Assembly: GCF_006345805.1 (NCBI RefSeq)
Contig: NC_043001.1
Span: 117,118,001-117,182,000, forward strand
Source of the DNA: Octopus sinensis
Lineage: Eukaryota
DNA: 64,000 nucleotides
Direction: 5' to 3'
In this document: piece after piece, positions 8,396 to 62,797 of the stretch
Layout of the letters: each line of letters begins with the position of its first letter
How positions within the stretch are numbered: position 1 is the first letter of the stretch
Made by a program: the position numbers and the translations under genes
Notes under the pieces: generated by a model
What the model saw: the letters and a program-made list of their open reading frames with translations, nothing else
Told to the model about the DNA's origin: nothing
Databases searched by the model: none

Positions 8396-8774
8396 GGAGC
8401 ACTCCGTCGGTTACGACGATGAGGGTCCCAGCTGATACGATCAGCGGAATAGCTTGCTCGTGGAATTAACGTGCAAGTGGCTGAGCACTCCACAGACACG
8501 TGTACCCTTAACATAGTTCTTGAGGAGATTCAGCGTGACACAGAGTGAGACAAGGCTGATCCTTTGAAATACAAGTACAACAGAAACAGGAAGTAAGAGT
8601 GAGAGAAAGTTGTGGTGAAAGAGTACAGCAGGGATCACCACCATCCCCTGCGGGAGCCTTGCAAAGCTTTAGGTATTTTCACTCAATAAACACTCACAAT
8701 ACCCGGTCTGGGAATCGAAACCGTGATCCTACGACCGCGAGTCCGCTGCCCTAACCACTGGGCCATTGCGCCTC
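8396..8774 (-). mobile_element. SINE-C, full length
   Basis: Same family as 152-534. 13-bp TSD CTCACAAAACAAT at 8381-8393 and 8775-8787. Confidence 0.9.
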
Positions 8775-10690: not shown

Positions 10691-10925
10691 GGGGCGCGTG
10701 GCTTAGTGGTTAGGGTGTCAGCACCATGATCGTAAGACTGTGGTTTCGATTCCTGGACCGGGCGACGCGTTGTGTTCTTGAGCAAAAAACGTTGCTCCAG
10801 TTCACTCAGTTGGCAAAAATGAGTAACGCTGCGATGGACTGGCATCCCATCCAGCTGGGGAATACATATGCCATTGAAACCGGGCCCATGAGCCTGGCTA
10901 GGTTTTAAAAGGGCGCATTTATCTT
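10691..10925 (+). mobile_element. SINE-G, full length
   Basis: tRNA-like head GGCGCGTGGCTTAGTGGTTAGGG...GTTTCGATTCC. The central GCGATGGACTGGCATCCCATCCAG resembles the V-SINE-type domain (from memory). Confidence 0.8.
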
Positions 10926-24871: not shown

Positions 24872-25170
24872 TCACGTCACGTGACCGACCAGGCTATCAG
24901 ATGTTGCTACACATCGCTGGTCACAATGCGCTTCACATTGTTTTAGCCTTCAAATGATGCCACCCCGCTGGCTAAGCGAGGAGCAGGCCAAACAGAAGAA
25001 AGAGTGAGAGAAAGTTGTGGCGAAAGAGTACAGCAGGGATCGCCACCACCCCTGCCGGAGCTTTAGGTGTTTTCGCTCAATAAACACTCACAACGCCTGG
25101 TCTGGGAATCGAAACTGTGATCCTATGACCGCGAGTCCGCTGCCCTAACCACCGGGCCATTGCACCTCCA
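24872..25170 (-). mobile_element. SINE-C-headed element with a different 3' tail
   Basis: 24990-25170 matches the SINE-C head and central part. 24872-24985 is unrelated to the SINE-C tail. Confidence 0.85.
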
Positions 25171-35949: not shown

Positions 35950-38280
35950 TCGTTTAACGTCCGTTCTCCATGCTAGCATGGGTTGGACGGTTCGACCAGG
36001 GTTCTGGGAAGCCAGAAGGCTGCACCAGGCTCCAGTCTAATCTGGCAATGTTTCTACAGCTGGATGCCCTTCCTAACGCCAACCACTCCGTGAGTGTAGT
36101 GGGTGCTTTTTACGTGCCACCTGCACAGGTGCCAGGCGGGGCTGGCAACGGCCACGGTCAGATTGGTGTATTTTATGTGCCACCGGCACGGAAGCCAGTC
36201 GAGGCGGTGCTGGCATCGGCCACGAGTCGGATAGTGCTTTTTACGTACCACCAGACCAGGGATCCTGGCTGGTTCAATTCGATTTCGATTTCGATTCCGC
36301 TTGCCCCAACATGTCTTCACAAGCAAAGGGGGTTGGCATGGGTGCCTGTCGTACGGTCGCATTGGAGTATTTTACGTGCCACGGCCGCGAGTCGGGTAGT
36401 GCTTTTTACGTACCACCAGACCAGGGATCCTGGCTGGTTCAATTCGATTTCGATTTCGATTGCCCCAACATGTCTTCGCAAGCATGGGGGGTTGGCATGG
36501 GTGTCTGTCGTCGGGTGAGGTTCTATATCGACTTCGCTTGCCTCAACCGGTCTTTGTGTCCAAGGGAGGAAAGGCATTCATAAGTGGGCTGGGCTCACTT
36601 GTCCTGCCTGGTCTTCTCACGTACAGAATATTTCCAAAGGTCTCGGTCGCTGGTCATTTCCTCAGTGAGGCCTAAAGTTCGAAGGTCGTGCTTCACCACC
36701 TCGTCCCAGGTTTTCCTGGGTCTACCTCTTCCACGGGTTCCCTCAACTGCTAGGGATTGGCACTTTCTCACACACCCATCTTCATCCATTCTCGCCACAT
36801 GACCATACCAGCGCAATCGTCTCTCTTGCACACCACAACTGATGCTTCTTAGGTACAACATTTCTCTCAAGGTGCTAACGCTCTGTCGAGTATGTACACT
36901 GACATTACACATCCATCAGAGCATACTGGCTTCATTCCTCACGAGCTTACGCATGTCCTCAGCAGTCACGGCCCATGTTTCGCTGCCATGTAGCATGGCT
37001 GTTCGTACACACGCATCATACAGTCTGCCTTTTACTCTGAGCGAGAGGCCTTTAGTCACCAGCAGAGGTAAGAGCTCCCTAAACTTTGCCCAGGCTATTC
37101 TTATTCTAGCAGTTACACTTTCAGCGCACCCACCCCCACTACTGACTTGGTCACCTAGATAACGGAAGCTATCAACTACTTCTAGTTTTTCCCCCTGGAA
37201 AGTGACGGAAGTTGTTTTCTGCAGATTTTCGGAGGTTAATGCTCCCGAGCATCTGCCACATACAAAAACTATCTTCCCAGTTAGCCTACCTTTGACATTG
37301 CTGCACCTCTTATGTGTCCATAGCTTACACTGGGTACATCTTATAGAGTTTCTACCTACACTTTTTCTACAGATCGAGCAGGGCCATCTTCCTGAAGATA
37401 TTTGTGGATTGTCTACCTTTCTACTTATTAGTACTTTGGTTTTAGCTAGGTTGACTCTAAGGCCCCTTGATTCTAAACCCTCCTTCCACACCTGGAACTT
37501 CTCCTCCAGTTCTGATAGTGACTCAGCAATAAGAGCAAGGTCGTCAGCGTAGAGGAGCTCCCAGGGACAGCCTGTCTTGAATTCCTCCGTAATTGCCTGG
37601 AGTACTATGATAAATAGGAGGGGGCTGAGTACTGAACCCTGGTGGACCCCAACCTCTACTTTGAATTCTTCTGTGTACATGTTGCCAACCCTAACCTTAC
37701 TTACGGCATCTCTGTACATGGCTTGCACAGTCCTCACCAGCCATTCATCTATCCCTAGTTTCCTCATTGACCACCAGATAAGGGATCGGGGGACCCTATC
37801 AAAAGCTTTCTCCATGTCAACGAAAGCCAGGTACAGGGGCTTATCTTTGGCTAGGTATTTCTCCTGCAGCTGCCTTACCAGGAATATAGCATCAGTGGTA
37901 CTTTTCCCTGGCACGAACCCAAACTGCATCTCATCTAAACTAACTCTCTCTCTAATTAGTTGGGCTATGACCCTCTCCGTAACCTTCATTACTTGATCCA
38001 ACAGCTTGATACCTCTGTAATTATTTGTATCTAGGGCATCACCTTTACCTTTGTAGCAGTTGACTAGTATGCTGCTGCACCAGTCATTGGGTATGACTCC
38101 TTCGTGTATCACCTGGTTGACTATACGGGTGACTAGGTTATAGCCGACACTGCCAGATATTTTGAGCATCTCTGCAGTAATTCCTGATGGGCCTGGGGCT
38201 TTCCCTGTCTTCATGCTTCTAATTGCCTTAGCTACCACGGAACTATCAACTCGGATAGCTGGTCCCTCTGTAGGGTCATG
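35950..38280 (-). mobile_element. 5'-truncated RTE-clade (RTE-X-like) LINE: complete RT domain, PHD-like finger, C-terminus and 3' UTR
   Basis: ORFs 36916-38238 and 36595-36912 are one frame split by a single TGA (SML*WMCN). RT motifs NYRGIKLL, QFGFVPGKSTTDAIF, FVDMEKAFD, GVHQGSVLSPLLF, LLYADD, YLG. C4HC3 finger at ~37250-37385. The 3' UTR ends GGAGAACGGACGTTAAACG. Confidence 0.95.
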
Positions 38281-46959: not shown

Positions 46960-47713
46960 TGAAACCACCATGCATTTTGGGAGAAAAAACCCTGCGTCCA
47001 CATACTCCCTCCACAACACTGATATCAAGAAATCCTCTTGCGAGCGTGACCTAGGCATCACTGTCAGCAGTGATTTGCGTTGGACAAAGCATATCTCTAA
47101 AATTGTCAAGAAGGCCGAGGGTGTCTTGGCATCACTCAGCAAGACTTTTGTTAGCCGCTCTCCAGCCATCTATTTAAAACTGTATACAGCTATGGTACGA
47201 CCACACTTGGAATTCGCATCATCAGTTTGGAATCCCTATCTTGCTCAGAACATTGACTTCCTGGAATCTGTCCAGAGAGGCGCAACCAAACGCATACCCT
47301 CCATCAGACACCTACCATATTCTGAGCGCCTTGTTTCCCTGGGCATGGATTCACTGAAGCTCCGGCGTCTGGCGACGGACTTGGTAAACACCCACAAAGT
47401 TATCAACCACCTCACCAACAACAACACTGAACACCTTTTTGATCTCCATGTGTCTAACACACGTGGACATGCCTACAAAGTCAGAAAACAACACAGCTCC
47501 CATGACTTTCGGAAACATTTTTTCACGCTCAGAGTTGCTGAAGCATGGAATAAACTGCCTGTGTCAGTTGTTGACTGCCATGACACTGCATCCTTTAAGG
47601 CCCTCATGCTTTCCGAAATCCGCTGAAACTACACCTGATTATATATACACTTTAGATGAGTTGTAGTGCACCTGAGCACTGTACACAATTATTATTATTA
47701 TTATTATTATTAT
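46960..47713 (+). mobile_element. CR1-type LINE, 5'-truncated; uninterrupted 218-codon ORF2 C-terminus, UTR and (ATT)n tail
   Basis: ERDLGITVSSDLRW, LYTAMVRPHLEFASSVWNP, LESVQRGATK, TRGHAYK and FFTLRVAEAWNKLP motifs. Confidence 0.92.
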
Positions 47714-52598: not shown

Positions 52599-52604
52599 TT
52601 TATT
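52599..52604 (-). promoter_or_regulatory. Polyadenylation signal of the peptide gene
   Basis: AATAAA on the minus strand ~70 nt after the TAG, followed by a long T-rich downstream tract. Confidence 0.6.
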
Positions 52605-52675
52605 GTCTTTTTTTCCCCGAACAATCTCGCAAAAAACATGAAGTAACATTGCTATGACTAACATTAGTCGCCATG

Positions 52676-52920
52676 CTAGGCCAGATATACTTGACAGAAA
52701 GAATAGTATAATTTTTCTTGAGCACAGCAGCCGTTGTAGACATCAATATCTTCCATTGCTCGTGCACACAAATAGCACAGACGGTACACGTCTTCGTCCG
52801 TTTGGCAAAATTGCGGTCGGGGTATTTTGAATTCAATCTTGCGGTTGTGAGGGAGACCTTCAGCCAAATTACACACAGGACCATTGTTATGGCAGCAAAC
52901 AATACCAATGTAGATCGCAT
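52676..52920 (-). CDS. Secreted six-cysteine peptide precursor (81 aa after a +1 correction in the T-run at 52866-52868); real gene or recent pseudogene
   Basis: The acceptor TTTTCTTTCTAG| is directly followed by ATG. Corrected: MRSTLVLFAAITMVLCVILAEG-LPHNRKIEFKIPRPQFCQTDEDVYRLCYLCARAMEDIDVYNGCCAQEKLYYSFCQVYLA*. 245 nt + 1 = 82 codons. Signal peptide with an A-x-G cleavage site, and AATAAA downstream. Confidence 0.75.
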
Positions 52921-52983
52921 CTAGAAAGAAAACAGATAAATAAGTACTTAGTGTTGCACTTTGAATAACTGAATCTTTATTGT

Positions 52984-53028
52984 CGTACGCTGATGACAGA
53001 TCAATACCTAGAAACTGCAGTCCGTGCG
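52984..53028 (+). ncRNA. Minimal type I hammerhead-like motif, intact core, weak stem II
   Basis: CGTACG CTGATGA CAGATCAATACCTA GAAA CTGCAG TC CGTGCG: 6-bp stem I, 8-nt palindrome ACTGCAGT and GUC triplet. Confidence 0.55.
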
Positions 53029-53259
53029 TATCACTTAGGTTGATGGGGAAGGATGACCTCCTTTGCAAATACCTTAAGTGTATAGAAAGTGTGTCTAAAG
53101 CCAGCTGGAGACGATGTTCTCCTGGGGCTGCAAGCTACAGTAACATTCACCCTTAGTGGTTAGCCATATTGAGATGGCAAATATACCTCACATAACTATA
53201 TATTATTATTTTTTTATTCAGTGCAATGACACTCTCTCCACCTCTCTTCCTCTTTATCG

Positions 53260-53302
<43 letters not shown>

Positions 53303-61432: not shown

Positions 61433-61809
61433 AAGGTAGTATAGGTAGAAGGCATTGACCAAGCAAGAGATTACTCACGGTTCAGTTGAGTTTACTGAGT
61501 CTGGGAACTGGAGATCAACGAAGTACAACTGTGTTTGATGTGTTGTGGGTTCGATCGAGTATGAAGATAGCAATGCATTGTTCTTGCCTATTTAAATAGC
61601 TGATCGATCGAGTAGGCGTGGTAAGTAGTCACAGCCTCATTCAATGTTTTTTTGGCCCACACAGGAACGGAGAAAGAGGAGAGAGAGAGAGAGAGAAAGA
61701 GAAAGGTGGAGAGAGAGAGAGAGAGAGAGAGTGGTGGGGAGAGAGAAAGAGTTAAATTGGTGGGTGTCGAGAAATCATTTGGAAAATTTATAGATTAATA
61801 AGATAAGTA

Positions 61810-62797
61810 GCATCAACAACAACAACACCATTAATAATTACATCACCACCAACAAGTACAACATCACCGTCGTCGTCACCATCATCGATATTACTACCAT
61901 CATAATCCGCACCACCACCACCACCACCACCAACACCACCACCACCAACAACCCAACAACACCACCACCAACCACACCACCCACCACCCCACCATCCACC
62001 ATCACCACCACCCCAACCACCAACAACACAACAACACACCAACCAAACCACCACCACACCACCACCACCACCACCCACACACAACAACAACAACAACACC
62101 GCCAACACCACCACCCCACACCACCACCACCACCAACACCACCACCACCACCACCACCACCACCACCCACCACCCACCACCCAACCCACACCACCACCAC
62201 CACCCCCACCACCACCACCACCACCACCAACACCACAACAACAACAACACCAACAACAACAACAACAACACCCACAACCACACCACCGACCACCACCAAC
62301 ACCCGCCACCCCACACACCCACCACCCACCACCCACCACCCCACCACCACCACCCCACCACCAACAACACAACAACAACAACAACAACAACAACACCACC
62401 ACCACACACCAACACCCGCCACCACCACCACCCCCCACCCACCACCCACCACCACCACCACACCACCACCACCACAACAACAACAACAACCACAACAACA
62501 ACAACAACACCAACAACACCCGCCCCCACCACCCGCACCCACCACCACCACCACCACACACCACCAACGACGACGACGACAACCTGAAAAACAATGAGAA
62601 GAACAAAACAAGTGTAGTGACACCACCATCGGCGGCAGTAGTAACAACAACAACATCACACGTAGCAGCCTCTGCAGCCTCTGCAGCATCGTTCCCACCA
62701 CCAGTAACAACGTCAACAACAAGTGCAGCAAAACCACAACCAACAAGTGCAGCGACCTCGTCATCACCACCACCACCAGCAACTGCAACAAGTGCTG

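Follow-up and report, generated by a model that had tools for sequence, protein, structure and literature searches.

The locus treated here raises the question whether two overlapping open reading frames (ORFs) on the minus strand of an Octopus sinensis contig belong to a single gene for a secreted cysteine-rich peptide, and if so, to which kind of peptide that gene belongs. The two frames, one of 106 aa with an ATG start (52600-52920) and one of 130 aa (52676-53068), lie in a stretch of 64,000 nucleotides, which was analysed as a whole and is called the window in the following; all window positions refer to it. In our reading the locus is probably a conserved spiralian prepropeptide gene, broken in its frame in the window, whose product would be a secreted and helical six-cysteine ligand of the endocrine or neuropeptide type within the CHH/ITP-HAND structural class. 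The frameshift itself is of modest interest; the main point is the family of proteins which is found behind it.

The features of the locus are listed in Table 1. The ORF listing returns the two overlapping minus-strand frames exactly as they were claimed in the preliminary description, and the TTT at 52866-52868, the AATAAA with its T-rich tract past the stop and the compact cysteine-rich domain at the end of the longer frame are likewise present. Directly 5' of the ATG at 52920 the sequence acttatttatctgttttctttctag forms a pyrimidine tract followed by AG. The first 17 codons of the ATG frame, MRSTLVLFAAITMVLCV, are strongly hydrophobic (mean Kyte-Doolittle value 2.03) and can be aligned collinearly with the signal peptide of a cuttlefish protein, MKSTLIISLFLALVLVT, which agrees with the signal peptide that had been proposed at this position. 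In the domain frame the window translates into LPHNRKIEFKIPRPQFCQTDEDVYRLCYLCARAMEDIDVYNGCCAQEKLYYSFCQVYLA and then reads TAG, with the framework C-x9-C-x2-C-x12-CC-x9-C-x5-stop, i.e. with cysteine spacings of 9/2/12/0/9 and five residues behind the last cysteine. On a cuttlefish contig (L020) an AATAAA is found 114 nt past the corresponding stop. By tblastn and blastn no second copy of the peptide gene and no P5CR exons were detected within the 64-kb window, and scans of the window for Rfam families and tRNAs came back empty.

Table 1. Features of the six-cysteine peptide locus in the window (Octopus sinensis NC_043001.1).
Feature	Position	Strand	Remarks
End of 5'UTR intron	52921..52945	-	pyrimidine tract and AG acceptor at 52922-52921, abutting the start codon
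Start codon and signal-peptide piece	52870..52920	-	ATG frame
Frame-change interval	52856..52880	-	between signal piece and mature domain; exact base not determinable
Mature domain, LPHNRK...FCQVYLA	52679..52855	-	59 codons; 46/59 identical to the cuttlefish mature peptide
Six cysteine codons	52807-05, 52777-75, 52768-66, 52729-27, 52726-24, 52696-94	-	domain frame
Stop codon TAG	52676..52678	-	domain frame; 5 residues past the last Cys, as in the rest of the family
AATAAA polyadenylation signal	52599..52604	-	71 nt past the stop; T-rich tract next

When the unaltered domain piece was used as the query against 5.8 billion protein clusters, a single match was obtained, the intact protein P0001 of 78 aa. 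With an E-value of 4e-29 to an intact protein, the window domain is not a product of chance. P0001 is composed of MKSTLIISLFLALVLVTES followed by a 59-residue peptide, which agrees with the window at 46 positions, and the overall identity amounts to 75-78%. It is located on a Logan contig (L001) whose P5CR is identical to the proC protein CAE1176423.1 of Acanthosepion (Sepia) pharaonis, and P0001 is therefore a cuttlefish gene. A variant differing in one residue, P0018, is found on two contigs from other runs. P0001 shows that all six cysteines are kept in another cephalopod, as the preliminary description had called for.

Between the mature domains of the window and the cuttlefish the differences are distributed over the three codon positions as 15/2/31, which corresponds to a pN of 0.14 and a pS of 0.80, the latter being saturated. 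The same DNA read in the two other frames is far less conserved (25/58) and contains stops. This pattern indicates that purifying selection has acted on the mature domain throughout practically the entire divergence of the two lineages, and judged by sequence comparison the window locus is the orthologue of a conserved gene with a single coding exon. The proposal that a gene with an interrupted frame is hidden here, and that it encodes a secreted peptide with six cysteines, is thus upheld by an intact orthologue, by purifying selection and by the family described below. It had further been expected that an annotation pipeline would miss such a gene. That is the case even for the cuttlefish, where gene calls on Logan contigs are its only record and the annotated genes of the genome do not include it, though the neighbouring proC is annotated there; genome annotation passes over very small peptide genes of one exon also where these are intact.

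The contig carrying P0001 (L001, 1-3807, Sepia pharaonis, Logan SRR30931882) contains a complete intron-less P5CR/proC coding sequence at 290-1141 and, at 1234-1252, an AATAAA with a run of A16 that resembles a poly(A) tail. The spliced peptide mRNA follows at a distance of about 2.2 kb, and its joining to proC on this contig is due either to read-through of transcription or to a chimeric assembly.

The architecture of the gene can be read from several loci. In three genomic loci (L004 from Lamellibrachia satsuma GCA_022478865.1, and the ENA contigs L005 and L006) the entire precursor is one ORF, and a phase-2 intron is absent from the coding region in these three as well as in the window exon. 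The acceptor abuts the ATG in the window, in the cuttlefish contig L020, in the Lamellibrachia locus and in L006, while in L005 a cag acceptor is placed 12 nt upstream of the ATG. The cuttlefish contigs L020 and L021 both read ...ttttcttttcttttttttcag|ATG. The contig L001 carries unrelated sequence up to the ATG, and its identity to L020 begins exactly at that codon, from which it follows that one of the two contigs is spliced and the other unspliced and that the acceptor is real and used in the cuttlefish. The start of the frame exactly at a splice acceptor, as given in the preliminary description, is confirmed by homology through this spliced transcript and the conserved acceptor. On the strength of these comparisons, the ATG is directly preceded by a 5'UTR intron and the coding sequence is a single exon.

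When 1.84 billion representatives were searched exhaustively with HMMER, 17 proteins were found at E <= 1e-3, and an indexed search added two more. The window domain shares with them a significant sequence match, the cysteine framework and the single coding exon with its acceptor at the ATG. Apart from the cuttlefish proteins, the members are at most 44% identical to the window domain. The only one with a public name is KAI0234816.1 from the tubeworm Lamellibrachia satsuma, annotated as a hypothetical protein. All members possess the six cysteines. Of the 20 aligned domains, 16 agree in the spacing 9/2/12/0/9 and in having five terminal residues; three members deviate in the first loop, having x8, x10 or x5 in place of x9, and one (P0026) carries an extra cysteine within the x12 loop, the last four spacings being the same in all others. 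The proteins begin with a signal-like segment, usually followed by a spacer that varies between members and contains KR, RR or polybasic sites, and the conserved domain occupies the extreme C-terminus with the consensus xRPxxCxxDxxxFxxCYLCGKLxxDxRIYxGCCxxxxxxxxFCxxLLx. No Pfam domain was recognized in the window pieces or in any of 18 members. A full-text search of the literature that included sequence motifs found no description of these proteins, which is absence of evidence only. The family is conserved in molluscs and annelids, is unnamed and apparently undescribed.

Some peculiarities of single members may be mentioned. The database protein P0011 (L003, 4464-4952) extends 51 residues beyond the usual end of the family, an effect of TGA having been translated as Trp by the gene caller; under the standard code its end is FCSSLLS-stop. 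Several neighbouring gene calls on L003 and L006 likewise contain in-frame stops. The most widely sampled member is P0009, which is present on 18 contigs; the ten shown (L007-L016) come from ten different SRA runs, and in each of them an antisense ORF of about 165 aa overlaps the 3' end of the transcript.

How the frame of the window copy came to be broken can be considered on this basis. The distance between the ATG and the conserved Pro-His codons amounts to 68 nt in the window vs 60 nt in the cuttlefish, which leaves 2 vs 0 when divided by three, so that the signal and domain frames of the window are truly out of register. Homology to the cuttlefish extends in the ATG frame as far as about 52870 and sets in for the domain frame at about 52861, and therefore the break can be placed only at roughly 52880-52856; it is not pinned to one base because the stretch also changed its length in frame. 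The addition of one T at the TTT, which had been proposed as the repair, is one among several that would fit. As assembled, the window copy cannot make the peptide: the ATG frame leads into a 106-aa out-of-frame product without the six-cysteine domain, and an uninterrupted ORF from signal to domain is absent, whereas all 19 other members of the family are intact. Neither among the 5.8 billion clusters nor by look-ups of gene calls was a protein or transcript record from O. sinensis found in either frame, and exact and near-exact look-ups of the 106-aa product found nothing on record. Since neither an out-of-frame nor an intact product is recorded, public data do not allow an assembly error to be told from a pseudogene, and the two are rated about equally likely.

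That the slip goes back to an indel of sequencing or assembly, or to a rare allele, the gene being intact and functional in O. sinensis, has nearly an even chance of being right. Only one lesion is present, and the ATG, the acceptor, the six cysteines, the stop codon and the AATAAA are all retained; the domain is free of stops and under strong purifying selection relative to the cuttlefish, and the 19 other members are intact without exception. However, no intact protein from this species or a close relative is contained in the 5.8 billion clusters, the run at the suspected position is short and no classic site of homopolymer errors, and the end of the signal peptide has clearly undergone indels relative to the cuttlefish, as the 68 vs 60 nt show.

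The odds for the window copy being a young pseudogene, or a null allele that segregates in the lineage, are also below even. It would be in keeping with a dead copy that the assembled ATG frame enters 106 aa of unrelated sequence and that neither frame is recorded in public gene calls, but missing records are weak evidence, as even the cuttlefish gene sits on only three contigs. In addition a second disabling change is missing across 59 codons, and the codon-position bias of 15/2/31 implies constraint over nearly all of the divergence.

The domain frame also remains open across the acceptor (AIYIGIVCCHNNGPVCNLAEG...), and an unseen upstream coding exon that enters the acceptor at 52921 in phase 1 would allow the domain to be read without any frameshift. 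We regard this as very improbable, since the window start (ATG, MRSTL) has its orthologue in the MKSTL with which the cuttlefish protein begins, the alternative reading is much less signal-like (mean hydrophobicity of 0.74 vs 2.03) and has three extra cysteines, and the coding sequence starts at or just past the acceptor in four other loci.

With regard to the kind of peptide, the most informative comparison is that of predicted structure. AlphaFold was run on the window's own mature piece with an alignment of 18 sequences and gave a model with a pLDDT of 87.7 and a pTM of 0.71, in which helices are predicted at residues 17-20, 22-35, 38-45 and 49-59. In a Foldseek comparison with 350,542 PDB chains, both models matched only three structures, at E-values of 2-4 that are not significant alone in a protein of such small size. 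The three are 2MUN (Ssm6a), 2M35 (kappa-Ssm1a) and 2MVT (SSD609). For the second model, the TM-score relative to the target and the rmsd are 0.84 and 1.6 A over all 46 residues of 2MUN, 0.64 and 1.7 A over 42 columns for 2M35, and 0.76 and 1.5 A over 43 columns for 2MVT; over both models the values range from 0.64 to 0.84 and from 1.2 to 1.7 A, respectively. Structures of CHH and MIH as well as the spider toxin Ta1a are absent from the PDB hits of both models.

The cysteines of the centipede toxins are found at positions 5, 15, 18, 31, 32 and 41 (and at 9, 19, 22, 35, 36 and 45), and their disulfides are paired 1-5, 2-4 and 3-6 (PMC7232367). The framework of the SLPTX3 toxins, C-x9-C-x2-C-x12-CC-x8-C, is identical to that of the present family, C-x9-C-x2-C-x12-CC-x9-C, in four of five spacings, and only the last cysteine loop is one residue longer in the family. 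Both groups are of similar size; the toxins are all-helical with three disulfides, as is predicted for the fold and may be assumed for the disulfides of the family. In contrast to these arthropod venom components, the family is of mollusc and annelid origin, evolves conservatively and has prohormone-like precursors. Sequence similarity to SLPTX3 was not detectable: profiles of 2 and of 20 sequences run against the PDB sequences gave nothing or spurious hits to CxxC zinc motifs. Ssm6a is classed as a HAND toxin, and for the CHH superfamily, to which the HAND toxins have been assigned, the pairing 1-5/2-4/3-6 is the signature (PMC8541221). Because the matches are HAND toxins and these have been placed in the CHH superfamily, the possibly CHH-like helical fold suggested in the preliminary description has structural support and is plausible, the cysteine framework being nearly the same. 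On these models the CHH/ITP-HAND structural class appears to have a six-cysteine counterpart in spiralians in the form of this family.

The family shares with CHH, ITP and MIH that the peptides are secreted, have six cysteines with a C-x2-C-x12-C core and, according to the prediction, form a helical bundle. CHH has C-x3-C where the family has CC, and its first loop is longer. Four helices are predicted for the family, unlike the five of CHH. Genes for CHH have two coding exons split by a phase-2 intron (Montagne 2010, as cited in PMC10501145), unlike the single-exon coding sequences found here, which are without such an intron. Membership by sequence in CHH/ITP, to which the preliminary description had pointed, was therefore rejected: the Pfam family Crust_neurohorm hits neither the window pieces nor any of the 18 members at E <= 10, the searches of PDB sequences were negative and the phase-2 intron is missing. 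The suggested link to eclosion hormone fares no better, as the Pfam family Eclosion hits none of the 18 members at the same limit.

A further group for comparison are the spiralian "CHH DREPs" of Koch et al. 2023, which include KOF87272.1 of Octopus bimaculoides, a transcript of Sepia pharaonis (GEIE01017690.1) and a squid gene that is expressed in brain, and whose predicted structures hit 2M35, 2MVT and a prawn CHH (PMC10501145). Like the present family they are secreted helical peptides of molluscs and annelids with a C-x2-C-G...x12-C core and fold hits to centipede toxins. The DREPs have, however, four cysteines (C-x2-C-x12-C-x11-C) and an N-terminal HYAG or PKG motif, as opposed to six cysteines here, and a phase-2 intron between signal and peptide (PMC10501145, Supplement 10), which the present family lacks. 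A profile-profile comparison with hhalign yielded a probability of 0.8% and an E-value of 0.066, which is not significant, and DREP membership was rejected. Because Sepia pharaonis carries both genes, the DREP and the six-cysteine gene are separate loci. C1 and C5 are both missing from the DREPs, as one would expect if they form a disulfide pair. The six-cysteine proteins thus appear to be a second, distinct spiralian family of the CHH structural class that would have retained the third disulfide.

In the intact copies, the gene would give rise to a small prepropeptide, the signal peptide of which is removed on entry into the secretory pathway. In cephalopods a 59-residue peptide would follow directly, from which cleavage at the R-K pair (residues 5-6) could release a form of 53 residues; in the remaining lineages the domain is preceded by a variable spacer that carries putative di- or polybasic convertase sites. 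With its roughly 50 residues, this C-terminal domain is predicted to fold into a compact four-helix bundle, which by analogy with the structural matches may be locked by three disulfides paired 1-5, 2-4 and 3-6, and the C-terminus would be free, as an amidation glycine is missing. The most likely role of the peptide is that of an extracellular ligand of the endocrine or neuropeptide type.

A different role would be that of a salivary or venom toxin acting on ion channels of prey, in the way of the centipede SLPTX3 peptides. Cephalopods have venomous salivary glands, and the sole structural matches are ion-channel toxins with a nearly identical cysteine framework. We nevertheless consider such a role improbable, as the family is conserved across phyla, including a tubeworm (Lamellibrachia) that is gutless, mouthless and non-venomous, evolves conservatively and slowly, is represented in the window by a single copy without tandem expansion, and has prohormone-like precursors with basic cleavage sites. 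An endogenous role is for these reasons favoured over venom.

The CLCCY precursors of lophotrochozoans, named as a candidate in the preliminary description, are secreted and cysteine-rich as well, but with their knottin-type eight-cysteine framework C-x6-C-x6-CC-x4-C-x8-C-x6-C-x-C in Platynereis, Capitella, Alvinella, Tritonia and Aplysia (PMC3890597) they differ in spacing and length, and membership of the family in that group is refuted. Another candidate, PaOGS36577 (Periplaneta NPLP, fliktin), was rejected by its description, which lists it as a short single-peptide precursor.

The endocrine or neuropeptide reading, if correct, has some consequences beyond this locus. To our knowledge, CHH/ITP-type hormones have long been held to be restricted to ecdysozoans. 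A four-cysteine spiralian relative of CHH was reported in 2023 on structural grounds (PMC10501145). The present family is separate from that relative and apparently undescribed, and its cysteine framework is almost exactly of the centipede HAND type. If the resemblance is due to common descent, the presumed origin of the centipede HAND toxins changes and an orphan peptide hormone is added to the endocrinology of cephalopods and annelids. One could go further and speculate that the family is an ancient protostome hormone lineage, whose full HAND framework C-x9-C-x2-C-x12-CC-x8/9-C predates the split of molluscs, annelids and arthropods, and that SLPTX3 was recruited from an arthropod member of that lineage and did not arise by truncation of a CHH/ITP hormone. 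This is an unlikely scenario on present grounds, but in that case the CHH superfamily would gain a third, orphan branch. The intact cuttlefish sequence can be used for synthesis, structure determination and the search for a receptor. For ITP, membrane guanylyl cyclases and GPCRs have been reported as receptors (PMC13311285).

Besides the peptide gene the window holds several other features. On the minus strand, about 320 nt ahead of the peptide exon, microsatellites of the types (GT)n and (GA)n are located at 53240-53300. A 440-aa ORF on the minus strand (36916-38238) hits RVT_1 with an E-value of 1.9e-32 and contains a weak PHD-like zinc finger, which identifies it as a retroelement fragment. 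By its sequence the 218-aa ORF with an ATG start on the plus strand at 46970-47626 resembles the C-terminal portion of ORF2 from a non-LTR retroelement, though neither Pfam nor the protein collection gave a match. As weak side hits of tblastn, the translated motif R(R/K)I(A/T)VSIPRP recurs at 462-491, 1605-1634, 8692-8739, 10725-10760 and 25098-25124 and probably marks a dispersed repeat family. Finally, a G/T-rich low-complexity tract of about 1 kb at 61788-62791 yields long spurious ORFs.
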